This document shows positions 20,860 through 47,789 of a stretch of DNA of 64,000 nt, in pieces; within the stretch, counting starts at the first letter, position 1; every line of letters begins with the position of its first letter. The DNA is from Hydrolagus colliei. Its lineage: Eukaryota. The notes beneath the pieces are model-generated. The model was not told the origin of the DNA and did no database searches. It was given only the letters and a program-made list of their open reading frames with translations. A program made the position numbers and the translations under genes. The stretch spans positions 9,486,001-9,550,000 of the forward strand of contig CM068757.1 in NCBI GenBank assembly GCA_035084275.1, given 5' to 3'.

Positions 20860-21750
20860 TAGGTCAGGGTAGGTAGGAAACCTCCAGTCTGGTTTCTGCC
20901 CTGCCCACAGTTCAGAGACTGTGCTTGTGAAACTCACAAGCGATGACCTCTCTTTCCGTGATCAGTCCTCTATATCTCTATCCCTCTTCCTCCTTGTCCT
21001 CCTGGATCTCTCCCTTTGTTTGACACAGTCGATCACGCCATCCTCCTCCACCGCCTGTCCTCCGTCATCCACCTCAGTGGGACCGCACTCGCCTGGTTCG
21101 AGTCCAACCTCACAAACCAAAAGCAGTATATCACCACAAACGGCTTTTCCTCCCGCTATCACCCGGTTACCTGTTGGGTAACCCAAAGATCCATTCTTGG
21201 CCCCCTTCTCTTCCTCATCTACATGCTCCCTCTTGGTGAGGTCATCCGCAGACATGGGGTACACTTCCACACGGATGACACCCAACTCTATTTCTCCACC
21301 TCACTTTGCGACCCCCAGTCCCCTGATGTTCTGTCATCCTGCCTGTCAGACATCAGGAGCTGGATGAGCGCAAATTTCCTGCAGCTGAATGTTGTCAAGA
21401 CAGAAGCCATAGTCTTTGGCTCCTGTCAATGTCTTCAATCACACGGCTCCTCCACCTACCTGACCTGCCCACAAAACTCTCCGAACCTGTACGCAACTTT
21501 GGCATCAGGTTCAACCCCCAACTGTCCTTCCTCCCCCACATCTGGTCCCTCACCATCACTGCTTTTTTTCATCTCCAATGTATCGCCCGTCTCCGGCAAT
21601 ATCTCACCCCAAAAGCTGCTGAAACTCTGGTCCATGCCTTTGTCACCTCTTGGCTGGATTACTCAAATGCCCTCTGCGCTGGTCTTCCCTCCACCACAAT
21701 CCATAAAATCCAGCTCATACAGAACTCTGAGGGTGCTATATAAACAAAGC
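20860..21750 (+). mobile_element. Degraded L2 RT fragment
   Basis: FDTVDHAILL, SILGPLLF, DDTQLY and NFLQLNV motifs, frameshifted. Confidence 0.85.
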
Positions 21751-22639
21751 TGTTGTTGTTGAATAATGTTTCCATTTGAAGCTGCGTCATGTCTTATCTC
21801 AAAGCATTTTTTGTACAACGAGTATAGTGTGCTGACTTGGGGAGTTGCTATCTGCACCAAAATGAGTGATCGAGTTTTTTTGGGGTGAATTCAGCTGAAT
21901 AATATTTTACAAAATCATCTTAAAATTGCATTCCCTTTCTCTCTCTCTCTCAATTTGTGCATGGTTCATTGTGGAAACAGTTTACATGTAGCACAAATAC
22001 AAGCTTGACTCAATGCCAAATGGCTCTGCCTCTGCTAGCAGCCTATCTACAAAGACTAAGCCCGAGCTGCATGATATCTACTATATACATGCACATTTGT
22101 TTTTTCTTTGCTGACTTTGATAAGGCTTTGGTGGATTCGTTAAACTCTTAAATTGCGGTGCATCTTGAATAATGTTGCAAAACAAAATTGCCCAGAGTAT
22201 TTAACTGAGTAAAGATTCTCTGAGCCACTTTTTCTGTTCTCATCTGCACATGGGTGCAGCTTCTTCAGGGATCACTGTACACTATAAACTAATGACGAAC
22301 AGGAAACTTCCTAATATTGTTACCCCCTACCCCTCCTTCTGCCTATGGATGTTGATGTCACTGCTTGGCTGAATTAATTGAGTCAAGTTCAGGGTTGGAA
22401 CTTGGGACTTTCCCAGAATAAGATCCATGCGAGGGAATTAGGCAGTGTCTCTATTAACAGATTTGTTGAAGAACTCAGTTGTATTCTCTCTGCGCTAACG
22501 GGAGAATCATTCACCGATATAATACATTCGGTACACTTTTGTTCTCCCAATTGTTCTCCCAATTGTCCAGCTGTTTAATGTTCATCTTTTACATATTTTA
22601 GCTGCAGAAATGGGAATTTGAATAATTTCTTCAACAACA

Positions 22640-25840: not shown

Positions 25841-28800
25841 TCAGATCAACTTGGGTTCGTATATACCAGTCAAACGATAATTTAGGTACTGGAGAGAGGT
25901 GATAGGGGGATACTTGTTTGATCCGTCACAACAGCTGATGATGGTTTCGTTGTCAGGATGGACGAAGAATGCCAGTGACTGTCGCTCGCTCTTGTCATCC
26001 AATTTTGGCAACTGGACTCGATGCATCTACAGGGAAAGGTACAAAGGCTTCAGTGTACACTAACACACATACCACTGGTGACGACTTGACGGCGATGCAG
26101 TGTATGTCCAAACTGACCATATTAGCTTTAAAATTCTTGCATTTACACAGTGACACATCACCTTGCCAAATCACTTCCAAGAGCTTCACAGGGGTTAATG
26201 TTGCCTTGGAATTAGTCTCCCAATGGGTATTTTTGAATTTAAAAAAATAATTAAAATCAGCTCACTGTGGATATCAGTGTGTCAGCCGTCCATCTCTGCA
26301 ACATATCTCCCACGTTGACCAGGACAGTGTTTGGAATGTAGGGGGCAGTAACATACTGTCCTGATCTGTTCATGACCTAAAACAGAGAATGTTGTGTAAA
26401 AAAAAGGATCAAGAACATACAGCAGAATTGTTTGGGGGAATTCCAAATGTAAATTACCATGTGTCAGCAAATTGTAAACGTTGATGGGTGTTTCCTCTTT
26501 TTAAGCCTCTTTTGACTTCTTTGGGCCGGGGAATTCAAAATGTTCACCACAATACTGTTTGTTGCATGACAATATTCCAATCCTCTCCCATTAGGTTCTT
26601 CTCTTTCCTATCCTTAAGCCCAGGAATTTCATGCTGGACTTTGGGTGCCCAAGCAATAACACTTGTCATAGGAAAACAGGGATAGGATATTGTTTAATCC
26701 CAATGGCCTATACTTTTTGCTATTCTCATTTAGAGAAGGGAGAGTGATCGTAGGCAAGATCAAAGAGTTATGCTTCCATAAGTCATGACTATGAGTAGAA
26801 GTAGAAATGATCAGTGTATTATAATGTGGTATCTGACATGGTGAGTAGTTAGGCCTATAGATGTAATGTGGCAATGATAATTGGGTGACCATATGTCCCC
26901 AATTTCTAGGGCAATCCTCAGGTGAGGTATTGTGCCCTTCGGGCCAAATTTTCCCCAACTTGAGTTCAGTAACAAACCGAGCAAGAACAATAAAATTGTA
27001 AAATGGATACACTCAACAGAGAATCGCAGCCATTTATCCAACAAGTTTCTCTAGCACTACCAGCATCAGGAATTGTGTTAAGTGAAATTTTCTTTTAAAA
27101 TGTGGACTTTGATTTGGTTTACAAACTATGGTCACCCTAAACACTGAAGTCTTTTCCTGCAGAAAATGAACAGAAAATGTAGACATGAGTAAAATTTAAT
27201 TGCAAGGAACAAACCTCCAGTCCCCCATTCTGATCCTGGAAGAGTAAAGTCAATGTTCCGTAATCCGAATGCTCCCCACATCGAATCTGATCCTCCAGCA
27301 CACTGGATTTTTGTACCGGGGGGTAGTACAGAGTTCTCAGGGTAGTTCGGTTTGAATCACCTGCAAAATATTATATGCTAGGTAACAATACCCTCAATGA
27401 GCACACACCAACATTTCTTTGTTAATTTCACATCATTAAGTTGCCTTTTAGAGAAGATTTGATTATATGCACACTGTTGATTCGTGAGCAATAAAAATAT
27501 CCCAGATAATAAACTATCACCTTGGACAACGTTATCATCCTCTTTAAATACAGGCACTAAAGCCTTACAGCAAGATGTACTTACTGTATATCCCTTTGTG
27601 TTTGTTAATGAAGAAATCTCTCTCGAGTCCAAGGCCCAACTCAAGAAGTTTCATAATTCTCTGAGCCAGGTCCTCACATTGTCTGAAAAATGATTCCATA
27701 CATCCTTTGAACTCTGGGGCCTCTTTAGCAGAAGGCCATTTCTGTATTGAGGAATAAATCATATTTTTGTTTCACCTTGCAGTACTTTAATGAAAACAAT
27801 GACAATGGTAAGTTTCCTATCTGTGTATTTATTATTTAGGCTTTGCGCCTTGGGACGTGCTCGTGAGGTCTGCTAAATTAAGCGCTCCAGGATGCTACCC
27901 TGCATGAATGACACTGTATAAAATGCAAGTTGTTGACCGGACGACCGGACCTAAAACCCACAACCCCAGCCTCGGCCGCAGCCCCGGTCAGGCTTCAGAC
28001 CGCAACGCCTCTGCATCCCCCAGCCGCGGCCTCATATCCGTTGGGATGATGCCGCCCCATTAACCCTCGCTCCTGGTCCCCCGCGTGCGCAATATGGCTG
28101 CCGCCATGACCCGAGCTTCCCTCCCCCTATTCAAGCTTTTCCCCCCAACCCCCCCTCTCCGTTATTTTTTCTCTACCCTTCTTTCTCTTCGCTCTCCTTG
28201 TTTACTGTCTCTGCTCGACCCTCCCACCGCTTCCCTCTGTTCCAGTATTGGAATCCTCCGTCGGGCTCACCGTGGCACTCGGCGCTGGCTGTCCAATAGC
28301 AGTCACACCAAGTGCCCTGTCCCCCACCATCACCGTCAGCCTCACCGGACACAAACCCGGGGGGTCAACCTCTCCTCCCTTATTCAGATCCCCACCCTCC
28401 CCGCCGACCATCCCAGCCCCCCCTCACACCCCTCGGCCAACTGCTTTTTCCGCTTCGGCCTCCAAAATGTCCGCTCTGTCTGCAACAAGGCACTGGCCAT
28501 CAACGATCTCATCCTTGGTGAGAACGTTGACATCATGGCCCTGACGGGAGACTTGGATCATCCCAGGCGACACTTTCCCCCTTGTTGAAGCCACACCACC
28601 CAACTACACATTCCACCATGCTCCTCAACCCAACCGTCGTGGCGGTGGCGTGGCCCTCATCTCAAAGACATCCCTCGCCCTATCCCCCTATTCCTCCGGC
28701 TCCTTCCCCTCTTTTGAACATCTCACCCTTCTCACTCCTCCCACAGTTCTTTCAAAATCCTACTAGTTTATCGCCCCCCAAAACCCTCCCCCACTTTCAT

Positions 28801-31800
28801 TTCAGACTTTTCTTCACTTTTAACTTCCCTTTGTGCCTCCTCTGATCGCCTTATTATTCTTGACGATTTCAACCTCCATTTCACCCCCTCCTGCCCCATT
28901 TCCTCTGAATTTTCCTCTTTACTTTCAACTTCTCCCTTCATATCAACACTGCCACCCACACTCACGGCCATCCTCTCGATCTGGTGTTCACCCGAGGCCT
29001 CAACGTCTCTGGCGTCACCATCACAGACAAGGCCATTTCTGACCATTTTTTCATTTCCTGCAACACCTCTATCCTTCCCCCCTCCACTTCCAAACCCACC
29101 ATCATCTTCTACCGGCCCTGGAAGAAGATTCCCCCTCAAACTTTCACCTCTGCCCTAGAAACCTCCGACCTCCTCCCACAAGGGCATTCTTTTTGTACAG
29201 ACCCATCCTCCGCCTCCACCGCCCTCCACAACACCCTCTCCACTACCCTTGACACCCTGGCCTCCCTCACCTCCAAAACCGTCTCCCATTCCCGATCATC
29301 ACCGTGGTACACATCTCACCTCCGTTCCCTCAAAAGCCAAGTGAGAGCAGTTGAACGCACCTGGCTCAAATCTGGCCTCACGGTCCACCTGCAAATCTGG
29401 CTGGACCGCATCAAATTTTACCGCTCCGCCCTAGCCACCGCCAAATCAGCCTTAATCCTGGAAGCGAAGGACAACCACCGCCACCTCTTCGCCACCACCA
29501 ACCAGCTCCTCCGCCCCCCCCCCCCGCCTCACCTCGCAGATCCTCTCCTCAAACGTTCATTGTGAGGAGATGCTGGATTTCCTCGAGTCCAAAATTGAGA
29601 AAATCCGCTCTGCGGTTTCCTCCCCCCACCACTCCTCCACCTCCGCGCCCTCATCAGCTACCTCAACCCCTACTCACCCCCCATTTCACACTTTCAACCC
29701 CACCACCCTGCTTTCAGTCACAAAACCAATCACCTTCATGAGACCCACCACGTGCTCATTGGACCCCATCCCCACCGCCCTTCTTCGCACCCAGCTCCAT
29801 TTGTTAGCCCCGCTCATTTCTGACACCATTAACCTTTCCCTCTCCTCAGGAACCGTCCGTACCTCCCTTAAAACAGCCACCATCACCCCTATCCTGAAGA
29901 AACCCTCCCTTGATGCGTCGCAACCATCAAGTTATCGACCCATCTCCAACCTCCCGTTTCTATCCAAGGTCCTTGAAAGAGTGGTTGCCTCCCAGCTCTG
30001 CTCTTTCCTTTCAAATCACTCACTTCTTGAACCCCTCCAATCAGGTTTCCGCCCTATCCACAGTACAGAAACTGCCCTGGTTAAGGTCACAAATGACATC
30101 CTAACCGCCTGTGACCAGGGCTCCCTCTGCCTCCTCGTCCTCCTTGACCTGTCTGCTGCGTTCGACACAGTCGATCACACCATCCTCCTTCAACGTCTTT
30201 CCTCCCACCTCAACCTTCAAGGCACAGTCCTTGAATGGATCCACTCTTATTTGACACACCGTTTACGTTTTGTTTCTTCCAATGGCTTTTCTTCAAACCC
30301 CCGCACAGTTTCCCACGGCGTCCCTCAGGGCTCTGTCCTCGGTCCCCTTCTTTTCACCCTTTACACGCTCCCCCTGGGTGACGTCATCCGCAAACATGGG
30401 GTAAATTTCCACATGTATGCGGATGACACTCAGTTGTACCTTTCTGCCTCATCCCTCAACCCCCAGACGATCGATGTTCTGACAGCATGTCTGTCCGACA
30501 TCGAATCGTGGACGAGGGACAACTTTTTGCAATTGAACGTGAATAAGACCGAGGCCCTCCTGATTGGCTCAAGCCAGCGCCTCCGCACATCGGGCGCTGC
30601 CAGCCTCAACATCCAAGGCTGCACTCTCCACCTCACAAAGCCAATCAGGAACCTTGGCATCATGTTCGATCAAAAACTTTCCTTCCTCCCCCACATCCGC
30701 GCCTTGACCGGCACCGCCTATTTCCATCTGCGCAACATTGCCAGGCTCCGCAACTATCTTACCCCCCGCGCTGCCGAAACACTCGTGCACGCATACATCA
30801 CCTCATGGCTGGATTACGGAAATTCTCTCCTAGTCGGCCTCCCCAGTTCCTCCATTCATAGGCTGCAGGCCATCCAAAACTCTGCAGCCCGTGTACTATC
30901 CCGCACCCGCCTCCGCGACCACATAACTCACACCCTCGCCCGTCTCCACTGGCTCCCCATCCTCCAGAGGATCGAATTTAAGATCCTCCTCCTCACCTAC
31001 AAGGCCTTACACGGCCTTGCCCCATCCTACCTAACCGATCTACTCTCCCCCTACACGCCCACCCGGACCCTCCGTTCAACAGGACTTGGCCTGCTCCAAT
31101 CCCCCCGCCCGAACTGCCCCACCATCGGAGGCCGGGCCTTCAGTTTCTCCGCTCCCACCTTATGGAATGCCATCCCTCAATCCCTCCGTTTCGCCTCTTC
31201 CCTTTCCTCTTTCAAGGCCGATTTGAAGACTTTCCTCTTCGATCGTGCCTTTTGTTCCACCCCGAACTCTTTTACCTCCCCTTCGTGTTTCACCCCTTCC
31301 CAAACACTCCCCTCCCAGCTCGGGTCATACGCCTCTTGTTTAGCACCTTGGGACGTCCTCCCGACTTGAAAGGCGCTACGTAAATGTAAATTGTTGTTGT
31401 TGTTGTTGTTGATGTGAAAGGTGCTCCTGAATCATGGGTAGCTTGGAGGTAAGTTGGAGGTGAAATAAGCTTCCATTCTTTGGCACCAAGCCCCAAAAGA
31501 ACACATTCTGCCCCACCAATAATTTTGTGTTACCCAAGGCAGGTTTGAGTGCTTTTTATGTTCAGTCCCAAATTAGGAGTAATTTGCTGTGTTGCCAATA
31601 GCTGCCATAAATATGCCCAACCCTCTACTGTGTTAATAAAAAGTGCTTGTACTTGTCTATCCACCAGCTGGTTCTATTTGTTTAGGTTTATAGCACTGAA
31701 TATTGAAATGTTTTATATTGGAACAAAGAAAACTGAGGAGGAGACTTGATAAGGATGATCAAATCAACAGGGAGAAATTATTTCCACTGATCAGTGAGTC

Positions 31801-34131
31801 AGTGACGAGAGGTATTCAATTTAAGGTAGTTAGTAAATGAGCAGGATGGAAGAGTTTTATTTCACTTTCACTAATAATTTCAGAAACCAGAGGAAGAGCA
31901 TGTTCACACTTCCCATTGAAAAATGAGTCACCAATTGCCAATGCTACAGCTTCCCCAAGGGATCTTAATTTGCGGGTTAACCATATGCAAAGAGGTATAT
32001 ATGGAGAGAAATATGCAATTAATAGCCAATAAATCTGCAGAGCTCCCCACTACAATAATCCTTGCATTTGATGGAGTGCCTCACCAAGTCATTGAGACAT
32101 CTCAAAGCACTTCACAGAATATATTGGGACGTCCTCCCGATGTGAAAAAAAGCTATACAAATGTAATTTGGTTTTGTTATTGTTGTGACGTGGATTAAAC
32201 TGTTATTTTGTGGACGAAACATGGCAGCCATTTGCACACAGCAGTTTCCCAAAAACAGTGGTGGATTAAGTTACTAATTTATTATTTTTTGGGTGGAAAG
32301 ATGATTACCCCTATATAGTAGGGAGGTCCCAGTCCGCGCTCATACTACTTACATCGTTGGGCAAGGTTATGTTGAAGGCTTCCTTCAGGTCTGTAGGGCG
32401 TTTCTGATTCAATCTGTGAAGAATCAATGTGTTTATAAACCATGTCATACTGTTATTCATAATTAATCACCTGGCATAAATCGAGAACTTTGAGGCAGTA
32501 ACAGGAAGCTGTGAGGATCGCCAACTCAGTTTACCTCCACAGAAGTCATACTTGAGCACAATAGTGCTCTGCGCAGGCTGCACGGAAATTACTGCAGACA
32601 GTTCTGGTCTGGTTAGTTCAGGTTCTTTAGCTTTGAAAGGAAATGTCTTAGAGGGGAACTTGTATATGATTTTAAATGGGATTGAAAAATTAAACTAAAA
32701 CAATACTTCGTGGATGCACCAAGATAGCAGAAAATGAAACAGGCTAGGGTTCCACTTGGCAAGTTGAAGGCAGGAATTATTTCTTTACTAAGAGGGTAAT
32801 TAACTGGCATAGTTTATGAGGAAAGGAGGTTGAGGCCAACATGCTGGACTTGTTTTAAAAACAGTTGTGGGATGGGAAGGCAGCACAGTATGTGTTATGG
32901 AAAGAATAGATCAAATGATTAAAAGATTAATATTAAATGGGCTGAAGAGCCTTCTTCATCAGAACCAATGTTACGATCATATTTGTCTACAAAATGCAGT
33001 GTGATCTGCACGGTACTCTGCCAAGTGCTTTGAGATGTCCTCTAGACGTGCACAGTACTGGCTCAAATGTAGTTATTGTTATTATTAGCTATGGAGATTT
33101 CTGTAGGTATAGGTTGTGCCTGATGGAATCATACCTTTCTGCTTCTATTTCAATCCATCCATTATATTGACTGTAATTGTTTAATGTATGGGCAGAGCAA
33201 ATCTTAATCTCTCTAGGAAGCATGAAGAAGTCCTTGGAGATCTCCATTGCTTTGAACACCTGTGGAACAAGATGGTTATGAAAATTGTAATAGATGCATT
33301 CTGTTTTCTAAAGAGTAAAAGTTGACTGAATAAATTGGATGTCCAAGGTCCATTTTCACTTGTTGATTGGAAATAGAGGTCGCAAATATAAGATAAGTCA
33401 GTAGTAGATCCAAAAGGGAGATTAAGCGGAAAGTCAAGTTTGAACATATTTATGACGGGGGAAATAAAGTCTGTGGGGATTCATTGTGCTAATTAACGCA
33501 CCAGTCAGCCTGGTGCACTTGTAGGATACAAATGGAAAGGCTATCTTCTGGTTTATCCTGCAAACCAATGCCCTAATATGTAGGAAGGCTCTGGGCGCAC
33601 CAGCAGGGGGAAGCTTGTGACACAGTGCTCTTAATAGCAAGCTACATGGGTTTAGCTGGTTAATCGCTTGCAGTTAACCTAATACACATTCTGGGGTACT
33701 CGAGCCGTGGCTCTTGCTGATCAGCCCATAATTCTCTCCAGAATCCGGTAAGCAATTTATGTCTCTGGGGAGAATGTGTGTATTCCATGCCACAGTAAGT
33801 GGCCAATATACCTGGCCAACATGTGGAACTCTCAGTCTGGTGAGATGCTTATGTATAGTGATTGGTTACCCAAAAATATTAACACAACAAAATGTATTGA
33901 AACGTTAGAGACTTCAGACAATATGTGTACAACACAGTGTACTATAACCAATGGAGTGTGATATTGAATGGTACCCACATTTTGTTGTTGAAACCCAATG
34001 TTCTTGAGGTACACAAACCCAATGTCCATGAAAGCCCTTGTAATCTCAGAGCTCATTCGTTGCAGTTCATCAGCTGAGGGCTCAGCTTTGCCTAAAGCAA
34101 AAGAGCCAAAGTCTACCACGGCAATGTTCAT
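25841..34131 (-). CDS. 2-oxoglutarate/Fe(II)-dependent dioxygenase, IPNS/plant-like DIOX_N + 2OG-FeII_Oxy type, 7 coding exons, 312 aa
   Basis: Exons (minus strand): 34131-33979 (MNIAVVDF...GFVYLKN), 33259-33135, 32413-32353 (DLKEAFN), 27741-27585 (KWP), 27360-27215 (LRTLYYPP...[15 protein letters not shown]), 26376-26266 ([13 protein letters not shown]), 26026-25841 (HRV...RQSLAFF, TGA). Phases all chain. The HxD...H iron triad and RxS 2OG motif are intact. Confidence 0.9.
27936..31410 (+). mobile_element. L2-type LINE: frameshifted APE endonuclease region, open 599-aa RT segment, (GTT)n tail; antisense within dioxygenase intron 3
   Basis: [11 protein letters not shown] (endonuclease), [25 protein letters not shown] and YADDTQLY in ORF 29570-31369; 3' tail ttgggacgtcctcccga...gttgttgtt. 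The 5' boundary is approximate. Confidence 0.92.
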
Positions 34132-36959
34132 CTCAGCCCCAGAAAGATGATGCCTCGTATATATTTCTGGTAAATAAACACAAGACAATTGTAACAGTAG
34201 AAAAGTGATAATCAGCCCAAGAGAAAATGCTCTCACTTTATTCTTAGGTCTCTTGTCCCAATCATACTCTCCGAATACGGGGGAGTCTTTGGAAGTGACA
34301 GAAAAGGATGTCTGCCCATATGGGAAGTGCATGACCTGTAAAAAACACTGCAAACTGGTCAAGAAGGAAACTAAGAATTACTACTCAAAACTGTTTTTTT
34401 CATTGAAAAATTGTGTACTACGTCCTCCCGACGTGAAAGGCGCTTTATAAGTTTAAGTTGTTGTTGTTGTTGTTGTACTATTCGAAATATCCTCTTTCAC
34501 TGTGAAATATCATCTTATAGGTAAACCTATTCTCTTATATGTGAAATATACATAAGCACTTTGTCTTATACAACAATAAGAACAACTAGCCAAAGTCTAC
34601 CACGGCACATCGCTTAGACTTCAGATATCCTCTTGTAAAGCATCTGGATATACTGTAATAAACAAGAAAAGCAACAAGTGAGGCTATGAACCTCAGAGCT
34701 CCCAACCACACAAAATATTAAATATATTTTAGAAATTTAGCATTTCACCCACAAAATACAGTCAGTTCACTTTACAATGTATTCTGTGAAATTCTTTGAG
34801 ATATCCTAATGACATAATAAGGCGCTATATCAAATACAAGGATTACATAGATTTTAAAGACTTCACCTAAAATTCTCTTCTCTTCTCCCACACCTTTTCT
34901 TCTGTGTTATTTCCCTCAAGCATACTCAGACACTGTGAATTAGATTTGAGTTGCTCCCCGATCTCCTATTTGGTAACTCTGCAGTTGAAACTCTTGACAC
35001 TGCAAGCACTTTTATCAGGTGACTCTTGTTGTTGAAATACTATTTAAATCAGTGACTAAACATTTACTCAGAATGTTGCCTAACTAGAGCCTGTTAGCCA
35101 ATACCTATTACTTTTCTTTAAAATGTGGCCTGTAAACATATTGACGCAGTAAAACAGTTTTTGTGATTTGACACAGGCTATTCTGTCAGTGGCAATCATG
35201 TACACAATTAAAATTTTAGTGCAGTCATGATCTGGGCAAAAAGGTTTTTTAAAAAGCAAAATATTCCACAGGATTTACTGTAGAATGTAGTAACTATTTG
35301 TAGGTGATCACAACAGCCAATTTGCACACTGTAATGTCTCACAAACCACCAATTAGTGACTGACCGATTTTATCTGGAGGCTTGTTGGTCAGGACAACAG
35401 GAAAAACTCCTTTCTTTCTTCAGGTACTGCTACAGGCACTTTAATGTCCACCTGAACAGGCAGACGGGACCTTAGTTTAATATCTCAGGCAAAGAACGGT
35501 CCAGTAACCCCCGCACTGCAACTTTAAAAAAAGAGAGCTGCAGTTCTGCCTTTGCAATATATTGCTTTGAAGTGAAGTTAAAGATAGCAACCATTTACTA
35601 GGGTTTTGGATTCTTCCAGCTGAGCTCCTGTGTGAAAACGGCTGAGCTAATAATTCATTGACTACCGATCTGTAAACAGCCGTTAGATATCTTGTCAACA
35701 GGTCAGGATCCCTAGTTACTTTCAAGGTTGCCCTCATAGGTCATACTTTATAGCAGTAAAATTTGTGACACTTCCCACACTTCTCAACCACATATTTGTA
35801 ACACAATGGATTAATGTGTAATCGTGTGTCAGCCTAACTCGGCGATGGCCTACATTCACACTGATTTAACAGTGTATCAGTTAAAGTACTTTGAGATATC
35901 CTCCCGCCATGAACGGCACTCTATGAATAATTTTTTTAACCAGCTATTTTTTTTTACCAATATGAATGTAATTTGTTTTCATTTGATTCAACTAAATATT
36001 TCATTGTAGATAATTATAACAATACTTTTTTTTATAGCGCCTTTCATGTCGGGAGGACACCTGAAAGCCTCATAGGATAAATGTACTATAAAGTGATGGG
36101 GGAAATAATGAATGCACAACCAATGTGCATAACAGTTCCTGCTTTACTGATAATTCAGCCCCAAAGAACAACCTTCGTTATCTGAATCCTGCAACCAATG
36201 GTCAGGTTGAATGCTCCACAGTAATTTCCACTCTGAACTGAGCACATGTCAAAGAATCCACACTCAGCGGGTAAACAGAGTAGCTCTCTCCCACAGAAGC
36301 TTCTCTTATTTTTAGGCACGTGACATGCCCTGTGTCTTTGAACATGGAGGTCAGTGAAACACAGTTTGCTTAATGTTCCATCGTCCAAAATTGTCATCTC
36401 CCATATGAAGTTTGTTTGGAAAAGTTTCATTTCCAAATATAGGTTGAAACTACAGTACTGTATTTAGAATGACCGAAGGAATGCCCCAAACATACAAGTG
36501 CCTAAAATGTTTTGAATCCGAATAAGCAACCAAACCTATGCCAGTCCCATAGCTCTGTCCATTACTCTATATTCAGATAACTTACAGTTCCCTTCAAACT
36601 ATGTATTCAGAATGCCTTTGTTTTCTGTCAGTCTGCTTACCAGTGCCCAATTCTGGTGAATGCTTATCTTGCAGTGGCTGAATTTGTAACAGACCGAAGT
36701 GGAAAACACATTTAGAAGGCTCTTTGTGAGAATGTGTGTGACTTGGGGAGGGATTGGGAGAGTTGGATGGTTCTCAACACTGATATATTGTTCCCTCATT
36801 CAGCACATTCTTGTGCTTCATTTTGATGCTTTATTCTCAAGACTCAATCTGCTTTGAACACAAACCAGAATTCTTTCCTCCGGCATTTTCCGGAAACAGG
36901 AACCCAATTCACTCTGTCTCCCTCTTTCCCTGGCATCCTTTTTATTAGTAATAAGTGAA

Positions 36960-37345
36960 AGGTTGAGTCTCACAGATTGAGTCACCTCAAAGTCCTTAAG
37001 AGGATATATAAAGTGGATTGACTGTGTATTTTGTGAGTAAAATGTGGCAGCTAATTGCACACAACAATGTTTCATAAACAGGCATGGAGTGAGTGGCCAA
37101 TTATATTTGGGGGATTGTTGGCCAGGATTCTGAGAGAAACCCTCTGCTCTTTCTAATAGCGCTATGGGATCTTTAATGTCCACTTCTACAGGCAGATCAT
37201 CTGAAGGACAGCACCCACGACAATGCAACATACACCTAGCACTATATTGGAGTGTCAGTGTAGACTGTGCAATTCCAAATCCTGACTTGGGGCTTGAACT
37301 CACAACCTTCTGACTCAGAGGTGAGAGTGCTCCCACTGCACCAGG
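36960..37345 (-). mobile_element. Deu-domain SINE
   Basis: Reverse complement gives head tggtgcagtgggagcactctcacctctgagtcagaaggttgtg and the Deu core. Confidence 0.7.
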
Positions 37346-38687
37346 CTAATAACACACAAGAATCCAGAGAACGAATGCAGCGTACAATATAACACTTTAT
37401 TCTGACAGGACATTTTAACAAAGGGCACTGGTACATGGATAGAGTAACAGAGGAACCACATACCGGTAATTGTTCTCCAGAAGCTGAGGTCCAAGTGATT
37501 TCATGCAATCATTGAAAAGAAACTACTGATTTTAATACGATAACATGCATCATAAAAAGATGAATGATTCAGCAAAGGTTTGGTTGACTAACTGAAAATT
37601 GTGCTGGATTGCAGTTTTTTTTTTGAAGGCACGAGATCCCAAATCTACTGTTAGACCGTTCTAAGCAACTCTAAGCAACTGTTAGTTTTAGTGTGAAGGT
37701 TACTTGAGCATATGAAACCCCAAGATAAATCAAGACAGACAATGTTATTCAGGTTAATTTATTTACCAACCTAAAACGGTAAAGCACACCAGTTATAATA
37801 CATTTAATATTGTGGCACATACTGCCAAATTATTAGGTGATTAAGCCTGTGAGTAGGAGGTTTGCTTACAGTAATCCATTTAACCAAATCTGCTTGTTTG
37901 TAATCCGCTCTTCTCCCTTCTAAACAGAAATTCCATCTCCTTTATAATTTTGATCCAGCAAACCAGTCTGATCTTGCAAATCTCAATCTGTCAGACACAG
38001 TGCAGATCCCATGGGACTGAACTCGTCAATTCTGGCTATTTTTATTTGGTCAGTCGAGTGTCTGACACATGTGGAAACCTATCATCATGATTATGAGTAT
38101 CCAAACAGAGCTGAGATTTGCATGCATCCCACCTTCACATGGAAATCCCAGAGATAAGATTGTTGAATTGGAATGTGCACTTTCCCCAAAATCATGTCCA
38201 AACATGTATGATGTGTAACACTGAGCTGTACTCTTGAGATCTTACATGATTTGGTGATATTGTCACATCAAATGCTTCCTTATGGTCAGCAGAATACTTG
38301 GGATTTAACCTGGGAAGCGGAAATATTCTATTTTAACTTTCATACCCCCAAAAAAGCTATCCCGCAATCAATACATTCAGAATTCATGACCTAGAAATTT
38401 CCTGAGAATTGGTAGAGCAACTTTCAGATCAGAGAGAACCTCTTTACTTTGCTGGATTTTATAGTGAAGAGAGGCAAGGGTGAGCTGCTAACATGATGGT
38501 GCAGGAATAATAATACATTGGAAGATATCTGTGGGCAAATGCTGCAGTCCATGTTGTGCGCAGCAGTGTCCCACAAATAACCATGTTATAACCACAAAAC
38601 CATGCATTTACATAGAACCCTTCACACAGAATAGGGTACAGAACGCTTGACAGTTATACCCAAAGGAAGTGCTTCAGTGAATCCTAC

Positions 38688-39263
38688 CTTTCGGCCTCTC
38701 CTGAAACCCACCCATGATTTATTACATTGGAGTCAATTGAATGGGAATACAGGTTTTTTATGTCTCTGGGAAGCAAGAAGAACTTCTTGCAGATCTCCAT
38801 TGTTCTGAGTACCTACAAGAACAACAACAACAGCAGCAGCAAAATTACATTTGTATAGCCTGTTTCACGTTGGGAGGACGTCCCAAGGCGCTGGAGGAAT
38901 CAAATGAAAAAATTATAAAATAAGCAACACTGTGAAATCATCTGTGGATCTTTAAACCCAAACTTTTTTTTTTCCGTTTTAGAATCAGATTTGTCAATTT
39001 TCTTTTGCAATGGCTACACAGCAGCTACTTTATAAAGGAGGAAAGTGACTTCACAGTGACATGTAACAACACAGTAAAGCCGATGGAGGGTGACAATGAA
39101 TGGTACCCACGTTTTGTTGTTCAAACCCAGTGTTCTTGAGGTACACAAATCCAATGCCCGTGAAAGCCCTTATAATCTCAGAGCTCAACCGTTGCATTTC
39201 ATTGGCCGAGGGCTCGGCTTTGCCGAAGCCAAACGAGCCAAAGTCAATCACAGCAATGTTCAT
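38688..39263 (-). CDS. Second copy of dioxygenase coding exons 1 and 2 (alternative 5' cassette or truncated paralog)
   Basis: 39263-39111 (153 nt, MNIAVIDFGSFGFGKAEP...) and 38812-38688 (125 nt, VLRTMEICKKFFLLP...NHGWVSGEAE). Same exon lengths and phases as 34131-33979 and 33259-33135, with intact splice sites. No own exons 3-7 were found between 34400 and 38680. Confidence 0.8.
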
Positions 39264-39669
39264 CTCAGCCCAAGGATGATGGCGCCCTGCACAGATTTCT
39301 AGTAAATAAACACGAACAAAACAGTTATTATCACGGAAAAGGCACAGAAGAGACTGCCACATTGACTCACTGTGTAACCAGTAAAAAAAACAAATGGGTG
39401 GGGGGCGGGTGGAGGGTGGAATCGTTGTCCACGACTCAGGCAACAGGAAGAATCCATATACAGTAATAGGCAGAATAAAGGAGGCAGTCACTTCCGTGCA
39501 TGTGTGCTGTAGTGAGCTGCTAAGGCGATGCTGTGGGAATAGGTATAAGTCGGAAGGTGTTGGGGAAAGACCAGCATCCCAGACCAGGGCGGGGGAGGTG
39601 GGAGGGGGGTCTCAAAGGACATCAGTACCAGGATCCACTGGAGAGAGGGAGAGGGCGAGAGATAACGCA
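39264..39669. promoter_or_regulatory. Candidate bidirectional promoter (dioxygenase upstream cassette / B7-H6-like gene 1)
   Basis: Divergent ATGs about 406 nt apart; Ets-like CACTTCCG (~39490) and CGGAAG (~39551); GC-box-like ggggcgggg. Confidence 0.5.
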
Positions 39670-42600
39670 ATGTGGCTGTTTGTCCTGACAGCCTGTGTCC
39701 TCTCCTCAGGTGAGATACTATTCCGAGTTCAGCATTTCGATCGAGTTACACCCGCCGGCGCGAGACGCCTTCTCCACAATCCGGAAACTTCTGCGTTTTA
39801 TTTTTTAAAGAGAAGAGAGAGAAAAAAAACCTCAGAGAAAAAAAATGCAAATGTAATATCGTTTGAAACTGAATTTGTATTGATTCAAACGGGGGGCAAT
39901 AAACAGCGGGTGGTTCAATGTGTTTCTGGCTGCCAGAGACCTTTGTTCCCGATCCCTATCTCTCTCTCTCTATCTCTCCACCTGAACTTTGTTCTGTTTT
40001 TAACGATCGACTTTTGCAATGATTCTGTTTGATCGACTGTTGCAATGATTAATAGTTCTATTATATATACTGTTTGCAATGACTCTGGGTTCCACTGTGT
40101 TCAGTGTCCAGTCGCCCTTGGGATGACCTCCCAAAGTCAAACGCGCTGCACGAATATGATTTGGTTGTTATTGTTGTTCAAGTCACTAAACTTTACAGTA
40201 AAATGCAGTGATGTGTATCTGTGTTCCTTGGAGCTGAACCGGTTCTGAGGTGCCAAGCTTGACTAGCAAGTCGCAATCCTGTGTGTCAGTCTCAGCGGTT
40301 CAGTTCCTGAGCCAAACTTTGAGCGAAAGGCAGCGTCCAACAAACAGTACTGGATTGAAAAAAAAATGTTGACCAATTTTTTTTTCAGGGATTATTATTA
40401 GGCATGTGGAGTTAAGGTAAACTTGCCCAAGGTTTCGCCCTGCCTGGAAATGAACCCAGGTTTCTCGCTGGTAAAGGCGTGCGCTCTAACCACTGAGCTC
40501 CAGGACTCCACCAATAGCCTTGAGTGTGAAGTGTGTAAATAAGAGTGTAGATAAGCTTGGGTTTGGTTTTGTAATGACACACAAAAAAACAGCTTTATAT
40601 GAAGCTGGAAACTACTGAGAGTTCACTGTTCTCTGAATGCTGTTTGGTTGTGTATGAATGCGGGTGGCGTGCGGAGATCGAACAAATTCTTTGCCTTGTA
40701 GGTGATTTCTCTTGGCTGAATCATTAATGTGACTCAAACCACTACAAGTGCAAACACAACTTCTGCCAATAATAGCAAAAGTCCTTTGATTTGGTATAAC
40801 ACCTTCTTAAACCTAACTCTTCACTGACCGCATTTTCTGATGAACCGCGTAGCATAAAGTGCCCCAGGTCTGAGGTGTATTTTGCTAATGTAATAAGAGA
40901 ACTATTTTTGGACCCTGGGCAGACAAACAACAATGTTTTACTTGTGCTTCTGGTTTACACTTATGTGCATCAGAATAAATCACATTAATGAGGGTTTCTG
41001 TAATGGTTGAAATAATTAGTATTATTCACTCACAAAACACACATTCATATGATATATTAGTTTTTATTATTAATAATCATGGAATGAATGCAGGTGAGGA
41101 TGTGGAATTTGGGATGAGCTGCAGCTTGTTGACTTGCATGAATTATACATGTTGTGGCCAAGGTGAGTTGTATTTCATGTAATCTGGCACGAAGAGAAAG
41201 ATCTGATTAAATAGTTCTATTATATATATTGTAGAACCTCCTGAGCAACACCATAACTAGTTGTTACAGGATTACATGTTTGTTGTGGGTAGGAATCTAT
41301 TCCCTCCCCCTGTGTAGTATAGTTTCATGTTACCTGTAGAGTTGTATCGTCACTTCAGTTGATAGTACTCTGGCTTGGATCAAAGACCTTGAGTTCGCAG
41401 TCCAGCTGACACTCCAATGAAGTCCTGAGGAGTACAGAATTGTTGGAAGCACCATCCTTCAAATGCAATGTCAACCCAATGCACCTATGAAGGTGGATGC
41501 TAAACATCCAGGTGGACATTGAAGTACTACAGTAAAACTTGCGTAAAGTCTTATCTTTTTAAAATTATATAATTGCCCAAGTTGTAGTTCCACTGAGCCC
41601 CATTCGGTTTCCTATTAAAATCACTTAGATTTATTTACAATAATCATGTAGCTCAGTGGTTAGAGCACTTGCCTTACGAGCGTGAGACCTGTGTTCGAAT
41701 CCAGACTGGTCAGGCCAAACCTTGGGCAAGCTTCCTTACTCCACACGCCTAATAATAATCCCTCCAAAGAAAACACAATAATAAAATTGGTCACTTCAAT
41801 CCATGACTGTTTGTGGGACACTGCTGTGCGCAATTGGCTGCCGCGTTTCACCCACAAATATACAGTCGATTCGCTTTACAGAAAATTCTGTGAAGCGATT
41901 TGAGACGCTGATAAGATGTGAAAAGCGCTATGTCAAATGCAAGGATTATTATTATAATTATCATTATTATTAACTATCTCCTAACTGGTAATACTGCTCT
42001 CCTAACCATTACTCCCAGCACTTATTGACTGCACATTGAATCGTGGGAAACATAATCTCGACCTGTCACCACATGCACATTTACCAGTTGCATCAAATTA
42101 CGCATGTGCAGTATAGCTTATGTATTAAATGTGATTTTATATGCTTTACATAGTCTGCAACTCAGACTTCGCGTTAATCATATTCAATGTTAAAGTCCCG
42201 ACTGATATCATTTCTGTTATTTTTAATTAAAAAAAGACACTCTCCCAGAGTCCTGCAAGATTCATTCTTTTTTTGAACAGTAGCATAAGATTGTTCGCGT
42301 CTACTTGAACAGGAACAGAATTTGTGAAATCTATTATCTATTGATAATGCAATAATTATGCGAATATAACTGTTTTTTCCTCCCTTGTTTTGCTGAAGAT
42401 GCTTTCGAGTTGTCTATCTTTAAGAGCCCGTTGGAAGTCTTACAGCATGAAAATGCCCTCCTGGGGTGTAAGATAACCGGCTACAGAAACGAGTCTGAGA
42501 TCGATCCAAGCAATGTCACCGTTCGGTGGTTCTTTGGGCCTGAAGGGAACAGAAAAGAAGTGTTTTCCTTCCATGGGGACAGCTACATTACAGCACGTCC

Positions 42601-45600: not shown

Positions 45601-47789
45601 GTTCTTACATTATTCCAGTTGGCCTGCTTGGCTGGACTACATGACAGCAGTTCAGAGCAATTTAGCCTGATAAATCATCCTCACTCAGTTTTGTAATTTT
45701 GAAGAGGGGAAGATAGATTTGTAGGAAGATTGAATGTAAATGGATCAGATTGTTCTTTGTGATTTTTTTTTCTGGAGTATAGAGAGCTACCAGCTGCTTG
45801 TAACCTTGTGCGGAGTATATTGGTCATATTTTTAACACTCAATCAATTTTGTTTCCCGAAGTTGCACCCAAGATACCGGAGATTATTGTGCCTCCTCAAG
45901 TCTTTCATCAAGAGCAAACGACTTTGACCTGTCTGGTAAACGAGTTCAAGCCAAGACCATTAGGTATCACGTGGTACCAGGTTGGGCGAGATGGTGCAAG
46001 GCTCGAGATTGCGCAGGTTGATCACCAGAGCAGAGTTGTGGTTGCCGACAACCCAAAGGCACAGAGCGCCAAATACGCTCACAACATCAGCGAGTTTATG
46101 CATGCGGATAACTCGTATATTGTCACCAGTGTGCTCATGCTCACACCGGCTGTGCAAGAAGATGATGGAACAGCTTACATCTGCAAAGTGGAACATGTTG
46201 CTACCGGTTTGGTCATGGAGAGAGCGATTGTGCTGGGCGTTAAAGGTACGAGGGAACAGTGATGCACTGATGTGTGTTGTAAACTGCCACTGGGGAAGAT
46301 ATTAATGGTGATTTAAAAAATGATCCGTTATTTTCACAAGTAGCAAAAATTCTAGTCAGTGGCAGATCTGATGAACTTTGCTGGATATTTGCTTGGCTCA
46401 GTGGTAGCATTCTTGCCTCTGAGTAAGATGGTTATGGGTTCAAATCCCAAATGAGGATTTGGAATCATATAGTCTAAGATGACACTCCAATCGGTGGTGG
46501 GAATGTGTTTCATTGACGGAGATGCTGCCTTTCAGATGAGACATTAAACCGAGGAGCCGTCTGCCTGTTCAGGTGGTTGTTAAAGATCCTATGCGCTATT
46601 TGTAAACAGAAAGGAGTTTCTTCTGGTGTCCTAGTCAACAATCCCCCAAAGAAAATCGGTCACTCGTTTCAGCACTCATTCGTGAGTGCGTGGAGCTCCT
46701 GTGGCTTAGTGGTTAGAGCACTTGTCTTGCAAGCTGGGGAGACCAAGCTGAGGAGACCTGTGTTCGAATCCAGGCAGGTCAGGGCGAAACCTTGGGCAAG
46801 TTTCTTACTCCACACGAATAATAATAATCCCTCCCAAAAAAACACAATAATAAAATTGGTCATTTCAATCCACGACTGTGTGTGGGACACTGCTGTGCGC
46901 AAATTGGCTGCCGCGATTTGCCCACAAATATATACAGTCAATTCACTTTACAGTATATTCTGTGAAGCGCTTTGGGACGTTGATAAGATGTGGAAAGCGC
47001 TATATCAAATGCAAGGATTATCATATATGATTATATATTATATTATTCATAGCCATTTGTGGACCATTACTTTCCTCTTGATATGAACCATTGTATTTAA
47101 GTTCCTAAATTTTGGGTATCACAGCTCAGGGAGAATATGTCATATTTGGAGGATGACCAGCATTGATTGACTAAATTACTGCCAAGGATGAAAGGACCAA
47201 GTGGATGGGTGGTTGTGTGTGTGTATATGTGGATGGATGGGTGAGTGCATGTGTGGATATGTCAGATCAGTCAGTCAGCCAGTCCTGGCAGAATAGACCC
47301 ACCAAATGGGCTAAATAATAAATCGCATACTTGGCATAGGGCATTTTGTGTCAGGAGGGCGCCCCAAAGTGCTTCAAAGGATACACTGTAAAGTGTAGTA
47401 ACTGCATGTTTTGTGCATTGAATGGCCTCCTCCTGTTCCTGATTAACTACAGTGGTGTTTGAAATTGTTTTTCATTCTTAGCCACTCCGAAATTGGATGC
47501 GATCTGGAAAGCATCAGGGCTGGCGATCACCAAGGAGGAACTTGTACTGAACTGCAGAATCCACTCCTTTTCCCCAAACGCTATTGGCGTTGTGTGGTGC
47601 AAGGATGGGGAGGAATTGCCCGAGAGCGTGGAGCTCAGTGATCCCATTTGTGGGAAGGATGGCCTGTATTGCTGCTTGAGCACGTTGAGATTAATGCCCA
47701 TCAAAAATGCTTTTGCCAGCACGTACACGTGCAGAGTTTACCACGAAAGTCTGGCTCAGCCCAAAGAGATGGAGTGGATCCTAGATTGA
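39670..47789 (+). CDS. NCR3LG1: B7-H6 (NCR3LG1)-like gene 1: SP-IgV-IgC1-TM followed by post-TM IgC1-like domains
   Basis: Exons 39670-39709 (signal peptide MWLFVLTACVLSS), 42399-42749 (IgV with the B7-H6-like VFSFHGD..RPGA..GDASMHLP..EAGEYTC), 43290-43610 (C1), 44327-44443 (TM), probable 45045-45317, 45862-46245 (C1), 47482-47789 (C1, TGA). All introns phase 1. About 597 aa with the probable exon. The symbol denotes family likeness, not proven orthology. Confidence 0.8.
41643..41972 (+). mobile_element. tRNA-headed SINE, same family
   Basis: gtagctcagtggttagagcacttgcc head through aaggattattatt tail. Confidence 0.85.
43700..44050 (-). mobile_element. CR1 3' fragment
   Basis: WNRLPGRVVKA..DSFKKKL motif typical of the CR1 ORF2 C-terminus. 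Confidence 0.7.
45045..45317 (+). CDS. Probable post-TM exon of B7-H6-like gene 1 (degenerate Ig-like segment)
   Basis: Polypyrimidine tract + CCAG acceptor and AAAG|GTAATC donor; 273 nt, phase 1-1, open. Contains VCLKAKMIIAHP (resembles VAPKIPEIIVPP) and YSCSV. Confidence 0.5.
45862..46245 (+). CDS. Gene 1 post-TM Ig C1-like domain A (Cys/Trp/Cys retained)
   Basis: TLTCLVNEFKPRPLGITWYQ...YICKVEH; CCGAAG acceptor, AAAG|GTACGA donor, phase 1-1. Confidence 0.85.
46383..46670 (+). mobile_element. Deu-domain SINE (AmnSINE1/SacSINE1-like)
   Basis: ggctcagtggtagc head and Deu core gatgagacattaaaccgagg..ctgcctgttcaggtgg..aaagatcc. Confidence 0.7.
46691..47035 (+). mobile_element. tRNA-headed SINE nested in an older Deu-domain SINE
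   Basis: Same family head and tail; follows directly on the Deu-SINE body at 46383-46670. Confidence 0.8.
47482..47789 (+). CDS. Gene 1 terminal post-TM Ig C1 domain B with stop codon
   Basis: LVLNCRIHSFSPNAIGVVWCKDG...YTCRVYHESLAQP-WILD*; TTCTTAG acceptor. Confidence 0.85.

Follow-up and report, generated by a model that had tools for sequence, protein, structure and literature searches.

In chimaeras, a 2-oxoglutarate oxygenase gene is preceded by an old, conserved three-exon N-terminal cassette

The stretch analyzed here (the window) comprises 64,000 nucleotides (nt) of Hydrolagus colliei, positions 9,486,001 to 9,550,000 of contig CM068757.1 (assembly GCA_035084275.1), and contains a complete 2-oxoglutarate (2OG)/Fe(II) oxygenase gene, gene A, on the minus strand. 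Upstream of gene A lies a second copy of its first three coding exons, termed cassette B. We conclude with high confidence that B is an old, conserved three-exon N-terminal cassette that has no catalytic exons of its own. Comparison with Callorhinchus milii indicates, also with high confidence, that B is an intact coding cassette under purifying selection. Its use is a more tentative matter. B may be an alternative three-exon 5′ cassette that is joined to gene A at exon 4, as an N-terminal tandem duplicated exon substitution, a proposal that we regard as quite possible and hold tentatively.

Gene A and the exons of cassette B

Gene A, as assembled from the window sequence, has seven coding exons with canonical splice sites throughout and encodes 312 amino acids (aa). 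All exons of the locus given below are on the minus strand. A 35-nt leader (34166–34132) precedes coding exon 1 (A1, 34131–33979, 153 nt), which is followed by exon 2 (A2, 33259–33135, 125 nt, ending in phase 2) and exon 3 (A3, 32413–32353, 61 nt, ending in phase 0). Exon 4 (27741–27585) starts the core, and its phase-0 acceptor fits the donors of both A3 and the third exon of cassette B (B3). The HxD of the metal triad is encoded in exon 5 (27360–27215; GEHSDYG), and exon 7 (26026–25841) supplies the distal His (MHRV), the RxS motif (RQS) and the stop codon. Exons 1 to 3, as well as exon 6 (26376–26266), were located by tblastn and a family hidden Markov model (HMM). The HxD...H and RxS residues are all in exons 5 to 7, exons without a counterpart in cassette B.

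The gene A product scores above the gathering score for both Pfam DIOX_N (PF14226, 53.2 bits) and 2OG-FeII_Oxy (PF03171, 79.1 bits). In a 56-sequence alignment, His196, Asp198, His253 and Arg266 are invariant and Ser268 is at least 90% conserved; gene A has all five. Its triad and Arg align to His214, Asp216, His271 and Arg286 of thymine-7-hydroxylase (T7H; sites from PMC4787775). The T7H of Neurospora crassa (PDB 5C3P–5C3S) is the closest solved structure by sequence (E=4e-45, ~32% identity). AlphaFold models gave a predicted local distance difference test (pLDDT) score of 89–90 and a predicted template modeling (pTM) score of 0.90, and the best fold match in the PDB is again T7H (template modeling score 0.84, E=3e-30). 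The gene A models show a double-stranded β-helix fold with an N-terminal extension. In having DIOX_N and 2OG-FeII_Oxy, the HxD...H triad and RxS, gene A resembles T7H and the IPNS-like oxygenases, and judged by its sequence it is a T7H/IPNS-like 2OG/Fe(II) oxygenase. Substrate oxidation by gene A is predicted from the family to be 2OG-dependent. Its relatives are fish proteins annotated ‘si:dkey-10o6.2’, ‘UPF0676 C1494.01-like’ and ‘htyE-like’, and its top database match is from C. milii (78% identity).

Cassette B lies 5 kb upstream of gene A, in tandem and on the same strand, with an open frame of 114 codons. Its coding exon 1 (B1, 39263–39111, phase 0 end) and exon 2 (B2, 38812–38688, phase 2 end) match the HMM at E=5e-17 and E=2e-12, respectively, and the gtgggt donor of B1 is kept in C. 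milii. An earlier note on this DNA, made from sequence without database searches, had reported that exons 1 and 2 occur twice with the same lengths (153 and 125 nt), the same phases and open frames. Its coordinates and identities hold: A1 and B1 share 40 of 51 aa and the two copies of exon 2 are 45% identical in aa, with tblastn values of E=1e-22 and 7e-07 for the exon copies. The note had also reported no second set of exons 3 to 7 and had suggested a tBLASTn search upstream. Exons 4 to 7 are indeed without trace by tblastn and HMM, but the same searches located an intact exon 3, B3 (38309–38246, 64 nt compared with 61 nt in A3, phase 0 end). B3 is in frame with B2 and encodes RLNPKYSADHKEAFDVTISPNH, with the junctions cccag/G...CAT/gtaaga. 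Its splice sites are present in both species, as a cccag acceptor and a gtaaga or gtgaga donor. Cassette B corresponds to the first ~113 residues, the DIOX_N part of the enzyme, and alone scores 52.3 bits for DIOX_N. Of 25 N-terminal residues that are at least 95% conserved in the family, B keeps 21–22 and A keeps 24.

A second copy of exons 4 to 7 had no match in the window by tblastn, run both with stop-to-stop frames and with the assembled protein. Between B3 and A1, a 104-sequence family HMM (run with --max on both strands of the window and of C. milii) gave no relic of these exons above antisense noise. The B–A spacer (38245–34894), which holds no such relics, is collinear with C. milii at 75–90% identity and 18 indels/kb. 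Cassette B either never had exons 4 to 7 or has lost them. A collapsed pseudogene with hidden decayed exons, the outcome that the earlier note named as fatal to its proposal, was rejected: tblastn and the HMM gave no relic of exons 4 to 7 in either species, and B carries no disabling mutation in 342 nt in the two species.

Conservation, selection and age of cassette B

The C. milii locus (L001) has the same layout, with B1–B3, a spacer of ~4 kb and A1–A7. Collinearity with the window extends beyond 25 kb and takes in a convergent nucleobindin gene, and aligned non-coding positions are 75–90% identical. Since the layout is common to both species, the duplication is older than their split. An assembly artefact was rejected, as the arrangement recurs in an independent assembly of another species.

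Between the window and C. milii, cassette B has a nonsynonymous divergence (dN) of 0.093 and a synonymous divergence (dS) of 0.25. The resulting ratio (ω) of 0.36–0.42 compares with 0.30–0.41 for the catalytic exons, and is 0.18–0.37 for B exon 2. Exons 1–3 of gene A are under weaker constraint (ω 0.6–1.0, frames intact), and the N-terminus of the complete gene A is faster-evolving than the orphan cassette B. In exon 2 of gene A (33135–33259 compared with 17626–17750 of L001), dN (0.21) exceeds dS (0.15), in small counts over 42 codons. A Fisher count test on B gave p=0.0034. In Monte-Carlo trials of neutral substitution, so few aa changes arose with P=0.011, and 75% of the trials produced a stop codon. 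Cassette B has no indel in 342 nt, for which the flanking rate (spacer and introns, 18/kb) predicts P=0.002, and no stop in either species; all six of its splice sites are kept in both. Indels start 10 nt past the B3 donor, so coding constraint ends at the exon border. Being constrained and free of indels and stops, B is therefore a coding cassette kept by selection and not a pseudogene in decay.

The duplication itself is older still. In exon 2, dS between A and B is 0.8–1.5, compared with 0.15–0.28 between species. In a tree of the N-terminal region, the A sequences and the B sequences of the two species are each monophyletic and are sisters within the chondrichthyans, with support of 97/97, or 86/81 without exon 1. 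The duplication is thus restricted to holocephalans and has at least four times the age of the Hydrolagus–Callorhinchus split. It arose in the chimaera stem lineage, when coding exons 1 to 3 were copied in tandem along with the exon 1 acceptor and leader. The B branches are about half the length of those of the gene A N-terminus, and B is the slower-evolving, more ancestral-looking copy. In the sawfish Pristis pectinata, the orthologue beside nucleobindin (NUCB) is built of the same seven exons, and the 10 kb upstream of it contain no extra cassette. Gene A is like the sawfish and C. milii orthologues in its seven-coding-exon structure and NUCB neighbor, but the extra cassette sets the locus apart from the other family members examined outside chimaeras.

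Gene conversion has touched exon 1. Of its informative sites, five group by species and three by type (A or B), which are signs of conversion. Exon 1 is also more conserved than exon 2 family-wide, and these two factors largely account for the contrast in A/B divergence between exons 1 and 2. At the nucleotide level, exon 2 of B matches its C. milii counterpart at 92% identity and A at 66%, while A exon 2 is 82% identical between species. B exon 3 is 81% identical between species and 54–61% identical to A. With so little identity to A, exons 2 and 3 of B cannot be maintained by gene conversion.

Possible products of cassette B

To describe what B could encode, its possible joins were enumerated in both species. 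Full-length enzyme ORFs (open reading frames) result solely from B3 joined to exon 4 (313 aa; 320 in C. milii) and from B2 joined to A3 (312 aa; 319 in C. milii). B3 joined to A2 is in frame, yet duplicates a structural segment. B3 joined to the A1 leader, B3 joined to a putative ‘mini exon’ of gene A (see below) and read-through of the B3 donor all reach a stop within 8–20 codons (for the A1 leader, 12 codons in the window and 20 in C. milii), and these tails are not conserved. A conserved read-through tail of B was rejected, as the tails are frame-shifted between species.

As B is intact and has no catalytic exons, sharing the downstream HxD/H/RxS core would be its simplest productive use. 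Transcription would begin in the promoter-like region 5′ of B, and B1–B2–B3 would be spliced to exon 4 (38246 to 27741, phase 0 to phase 0), with A1–A3 skipped. The product would be a second enzyme of 313 aa, giving two N-terminal cassettes for one common catalytic core. The earlier note had instead proposed a two-exon cassette, with the exon 2 donor at 38688 joined to the downstream exon 3 at 32413. The phases of this junction do match and its full-length ORF is open in both species, but it would skip B3, which is intact, in phase and flanked by conserved splice sites 378 nt downstream, and A1 and A2 would be skipped as well. Because it would bypass the conserved exon 3 of B, the natural junction is 38246 to 27741, and we give the two-exon form very little credence.

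The B+core enzyme would depart from the A enzyme at pocket sites that correspond to T7H Asn87 and Glu122, the two N-terminal substrate contacts of T7H (PMC4787775). A profile alignment places these residues at positions 83 and 107 of the family. At 83/84, gene A reads Tyr-Asn in the window and Arg-Asp in C. milii, whereas B has Asn-His and His-His. At position 107, A has Asn, as does 99% of the family, and B has Asp. Because A and B differ at positions aligned to T7H contacts, a difference in the substrate pocket is plausible. The divergent segment had earlier been described as a substrate-lid region; its divergence stands, but in T7H the lid is formed by the C-terminal helix α10 and not by the N-terminus (PMC4787775).

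The regions 5′ of the two cassettes differ. A 35-nt leader, with a polypyrimidine tract and an AG acceptor, lies before each ATG, and the A and B leaders are homologous. GT dinucleotides are present at 34236 and 39370, the starts of the matching introns of ~70 nt that the earlier note had proposed, each implying a non-coding first exon. The acceptors and leaders hold, but the introns stay putative, as paralogy 5′ of the ATG covers the leader and ~45 nt of acceptor region and the sequences further upstream are unrelated. A deletion of ~43 nt has removed the acceptor from C. milii B, so the putative 72-nt intron of B (39370–39299, gtgagt...actag), which is followed by the leader (39298–39264) and has a leader and acceptor paralogous to those of A1, is only a candidate. 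For gene A, an exon at 14571–14600 of L001 is joined to the A1 acceptor in XP_007886038, the older of two C. milii RefSeq models. This exon is homologous to the mini exon at 34893–34867 in the window, whose donor (TTTTAG/gtgaag) is ~700 nt 5′ of the A1 acceptor and which is probably the 3′ end of a non-coding first exon. The mini exon is within the most conserved non-coding block (identity 0.87–0.92), 3′ of a conserved CTGATAAAAGTGCTTGC motif, and the conserved block upstream of the putative gene A first exon carries a GATAAAAG motif. Gene A probably has its own non-CpG promoter and non-coding first exon. In the B–A locus, CpG enrichment is found only upstream of B, in both species (GC 0.48–0.55 and CpG observed/expected 0.64–0.68 in the window; 0.58–0.81 in C. 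milii). This promoter-like region (39371–39800) contains the motifs CGGAAGT(G/C)ACTGCC (ETS-like) and CCAACGATTCC, conserved in the alignment of the two species, and may serve as the promoter of B.

The frames of both ATGs are open for ~75 codons upstream through the leader and proposed introns (33832–34362 and 39051–39491, minus strand). The upstream frame of gene A holds an in-frame ATG (MHFPYGQ...), and the A and B upstream peptides are alike only beside the ATG. A conserved AUGA stop-start overlap at the gene A ATG was rejected as a coincidence, being present in the window (...AGATGA...) and not in C. milii.

Several observations weigh against the joining of B to exon 4. The A1 acceptor, 35 nt before the ATG, is strong (tgtgtttatttaccag/A; a paralogous acceptor is found at B1 of the window), and for this reason a B-initiated read-through transcript should by default include A1–A3 and end early. 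Skipping three good internal exons needs a mechanism, and none was found. No complementary selector or docking sequences of at least 9 nt were detected for B3 and the region before exon 4; for A3, complementarity amounts to a single 9-mer in both species, which was taken as repeat sequence. Sequence searches and exact look-ups returned no B+core protein from the protein collection, and exact look-ups of A, of B1–2 joined to A3–7 and of the B read-through protein also returned no entry. The C. milii forms on record are an A-only, mRNA-derived protein (V9KUE8), a B-only protein (A0A4W3IX99) and two B–A fusions, and the C. milii annotations are presumably backed by multi-tissue RNA-seq. AlphaFold modeling of the B+core chimera and of native A (pLDDT 90.1 and 89.4, pTM 0.90 each) does not discriminate between the hypotheses. 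Moreover, the selection tests rest on one species pair with 39 substitutions, and exons 2–3 of B alone give a Fisher p of 0.09.

Some of these points would suit a stand-alone short gene, with its own promoter and with polyadenylation soon after exon 3 or a transcript running into the gene A leader. Its product would be a core-less, DIOX_N-only protein of ~122–134 aa in a new, non-catalytic role, for instance as a modulator of A or as a long upstream cistron. The Ensembl-derived A0A4W3IX99 (133 aa) consists of B1–3 and read-through to the first stop. The read-through frame is closed by one and the same TGA in the two species. In the window an AATAAA follows ~200 nt downstream, at ~38045; it is shared with C. 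milii, but the background identity is similar. A CpG-rich upstream region of its own and the missing B+core protein fit this explanation, and purifying selection fits any translated product. However, B keeps residues that are conserved in complete enzymes, its B3 donor is conserved, and every possible C-terminal tail differs between species, with indels shifting the frame. The model of B+core shows the first ~113 residues within one globule, and in T7H/IPNS-type structures we take this segment to be packed on the jelly-roll and not to be an independent domain. No separate cluster of short B-like proteins (63–200 aa) was found, in a search that gave one candidate and none that scored and that is poorly informative, the 133-aa model being hidden in a 458-aa cluster. 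On balance a stand-alone gene is somewhat unlikely. It is unlikely that B is translated alone as a ~14-kDa DIOX_N fragment that purifying selection has kept since before the Callorhinchus split for a new non-enzymatic role, such as binding or regulation of the enzyme next to it or service as a conserved upstream cistron of read-through transcripts.

Cassette B is a 5′ gene fragment beside its parent and without 3′ exons, as are partial tandem duplicates and unprocessed pseudogenes. It could be a non-functional relic of this kind, kept intact by slow chimaera evolution, chance and conversion from A. Exons 4–7 and any remains of them were not found, gene conversion with A has occurred in exon 1, the exon identity of 89% between species is little higher than that of the non-coding background, and dN<dS in exons 2–3 alone reaches only the p value given above. 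Unlike pseudogenes, B shows purifying selection (ω ~0.4, p=0.003 over the cassette), no indels or stops, and splice sites kept in two species. Its exons 2–3 are too far from A in sequence for upkeep by conversion, yet B exon 2 is strongly conserved between species, and the B protein branches since the duplication are shorter than those of the functional gene A N-terminus. A relic is improbable on these grounds. Alternatively, B and A could be one gene for a fusion protein of B1–3, a linker and complete A, as in RefSeq XP_042197507 (458 aa). Two successive C. milii RefSeq models (458 and 465 aa) are so built, and in both species the frame running 5′ from the gene A ATG stays open across the leader. 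These models require read-through of the B3 donor and, by reconstruction, a non-GT donor. The read-through frame closes after 17 codons in the window. In neither species does splicing from the canonical B3 donor, whether to the A1 leader or to the mini exon, keep the frame of the gene A ATG. The linker shows no conservation, and the A-only V9KUE8 is mRNA-derived. Because the RefSeq models read through a conserved donor, they look like fusion artefacts. XP_042197507 is probably such an artefact of two transcription units, and a genuine fusion protein is highly improbable.

In both XP_042197507 and XP_007886038 (L001 10001–22731) the N-terminal segment is present twice. The junctions of the newer model (...YMC-S-LEIY...) could not be reconstructed from the genome sequence. 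Annotators of chimaera genomes should expect a similar fusion-model problem.

Known systems and neighboring features

N-terminal tandem duplicated exon substitutions, in which isoforms exchange homologous 5′ exons, are documented, with 40 of 236 human events in this class; the N-terminal event of tropomyosin is an example (PMC9741552). As in those cases, the B and A exons are homologous, in tandem, of matching lengths (153/153, 125/125 and 64/61 nt) and phases, both open, old and conserved between species. Inclusion of both B and A breaks the frame, whereas either alone gives a full ORF, and the aa changes concentrate at few functional positions. The locus differs in that the unit is a three-exon block, seemingly with its own upstream region in each case, and in that the first exon of the proximal (A) block retains an acceptor; exclusive use is here proposed from sequence. 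Splicing of B to exon 4 would be a further case of the documented class, in an orphan enzyme family.

The locus had been likened to the variable-first-exon design of UGT1A. In UGT1A and clustered protocadherin arrays, the variable units are single first exons with a donor only, and promoter choice fixes the isoform. In UGT1A, the co-substrate domain common to all products is encoded by the constant part. If B is spliced to exon 4, the likeness would be that alternative promoters attach N-termini to constant exons. Here, however, there are two units of three exons each, A1 has a strong acceptor preceded by a putative non-coding exon, and the constant part is the whole catalytic jelly-roll. Because of the multi-exon units and the acceptor on a variable exon, the locus is not a UGT1A-type array, and the earlier comparison does not hold.

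If B is joined to exon 4, a single catalytic core would serve two forms of an orphan vertebrate 2OG oxygenase in chimaeras, and the two forms would be set apart by residues that, in the fungal T7H, make contact with the substrate. Such a locus would provide an enzyme example of N-terminal homologous exon substitution that is clean, old and made up of several exons, and would offer a handle on the substrate or substrates of a fish-wide oxygenase family. If B is not spliced to exon 4, a selected core-less fragment would be the more interesting result.

Exons of NUCB are found at 7919–8317 and 13623–14144 on the plus strand, 3′ of the oxygenase gene and convergent with it. The same neighbor (Pfam NUCB1_N, EF-hand) is present in C. 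milii (L001 30795–32731) and in the sawfish (L002 34598–36120). Since NUCB adjoins the oxygenase gene in all three species, the synteny is old. A low-complexity tract of ~1 kb (9300–10370), purine-rich on one strand, is probably inside a NUCB intron. It contains long ‘PPPSLSP’/‘GGGERD’ ORFs in several frames and causes a strong GC skew at 8–10 kb.

Fragments of long interspersed nuclear element (LINE) type with RVT_1 ORFs, one of them of 599 aa, are located at 28085–31369 (plus strand), 21016–21762 (plus), 52513–53130 (minus) and 54535–55472 (minus). The largest lies antisense within intron 3 of the oxygenase gene; that intron owes its size and GC-rich composition to this fragment. A related copy is present in intron 1 of the C. 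milii gene. Short interspersed repeats are strewn through the introns and the spacer (40380–40500, 37200–37340, 34420–34470, 32110–32160, 31370–31400 and elsewhere). They include a tRNA-like head and a recurring TTTCACGTCGGGAGGACGTCCCAA motif, and are the source of most spurious self-matches.

Immunoglobulin-superfamily exons of one or more genes are on the plus strand at 45849–46262, 56506–56928, 59460–60041, 60335–60889 and 62487–63110. The exon types are C1-set, V-set, and C1-set followed by a transmembrane stretch. Two mutually similar ORFs without a Pfam match, WEVTGFKPKEIEI and WEVNGFNPRAIVI, look like further immunoglobulin-like domains.

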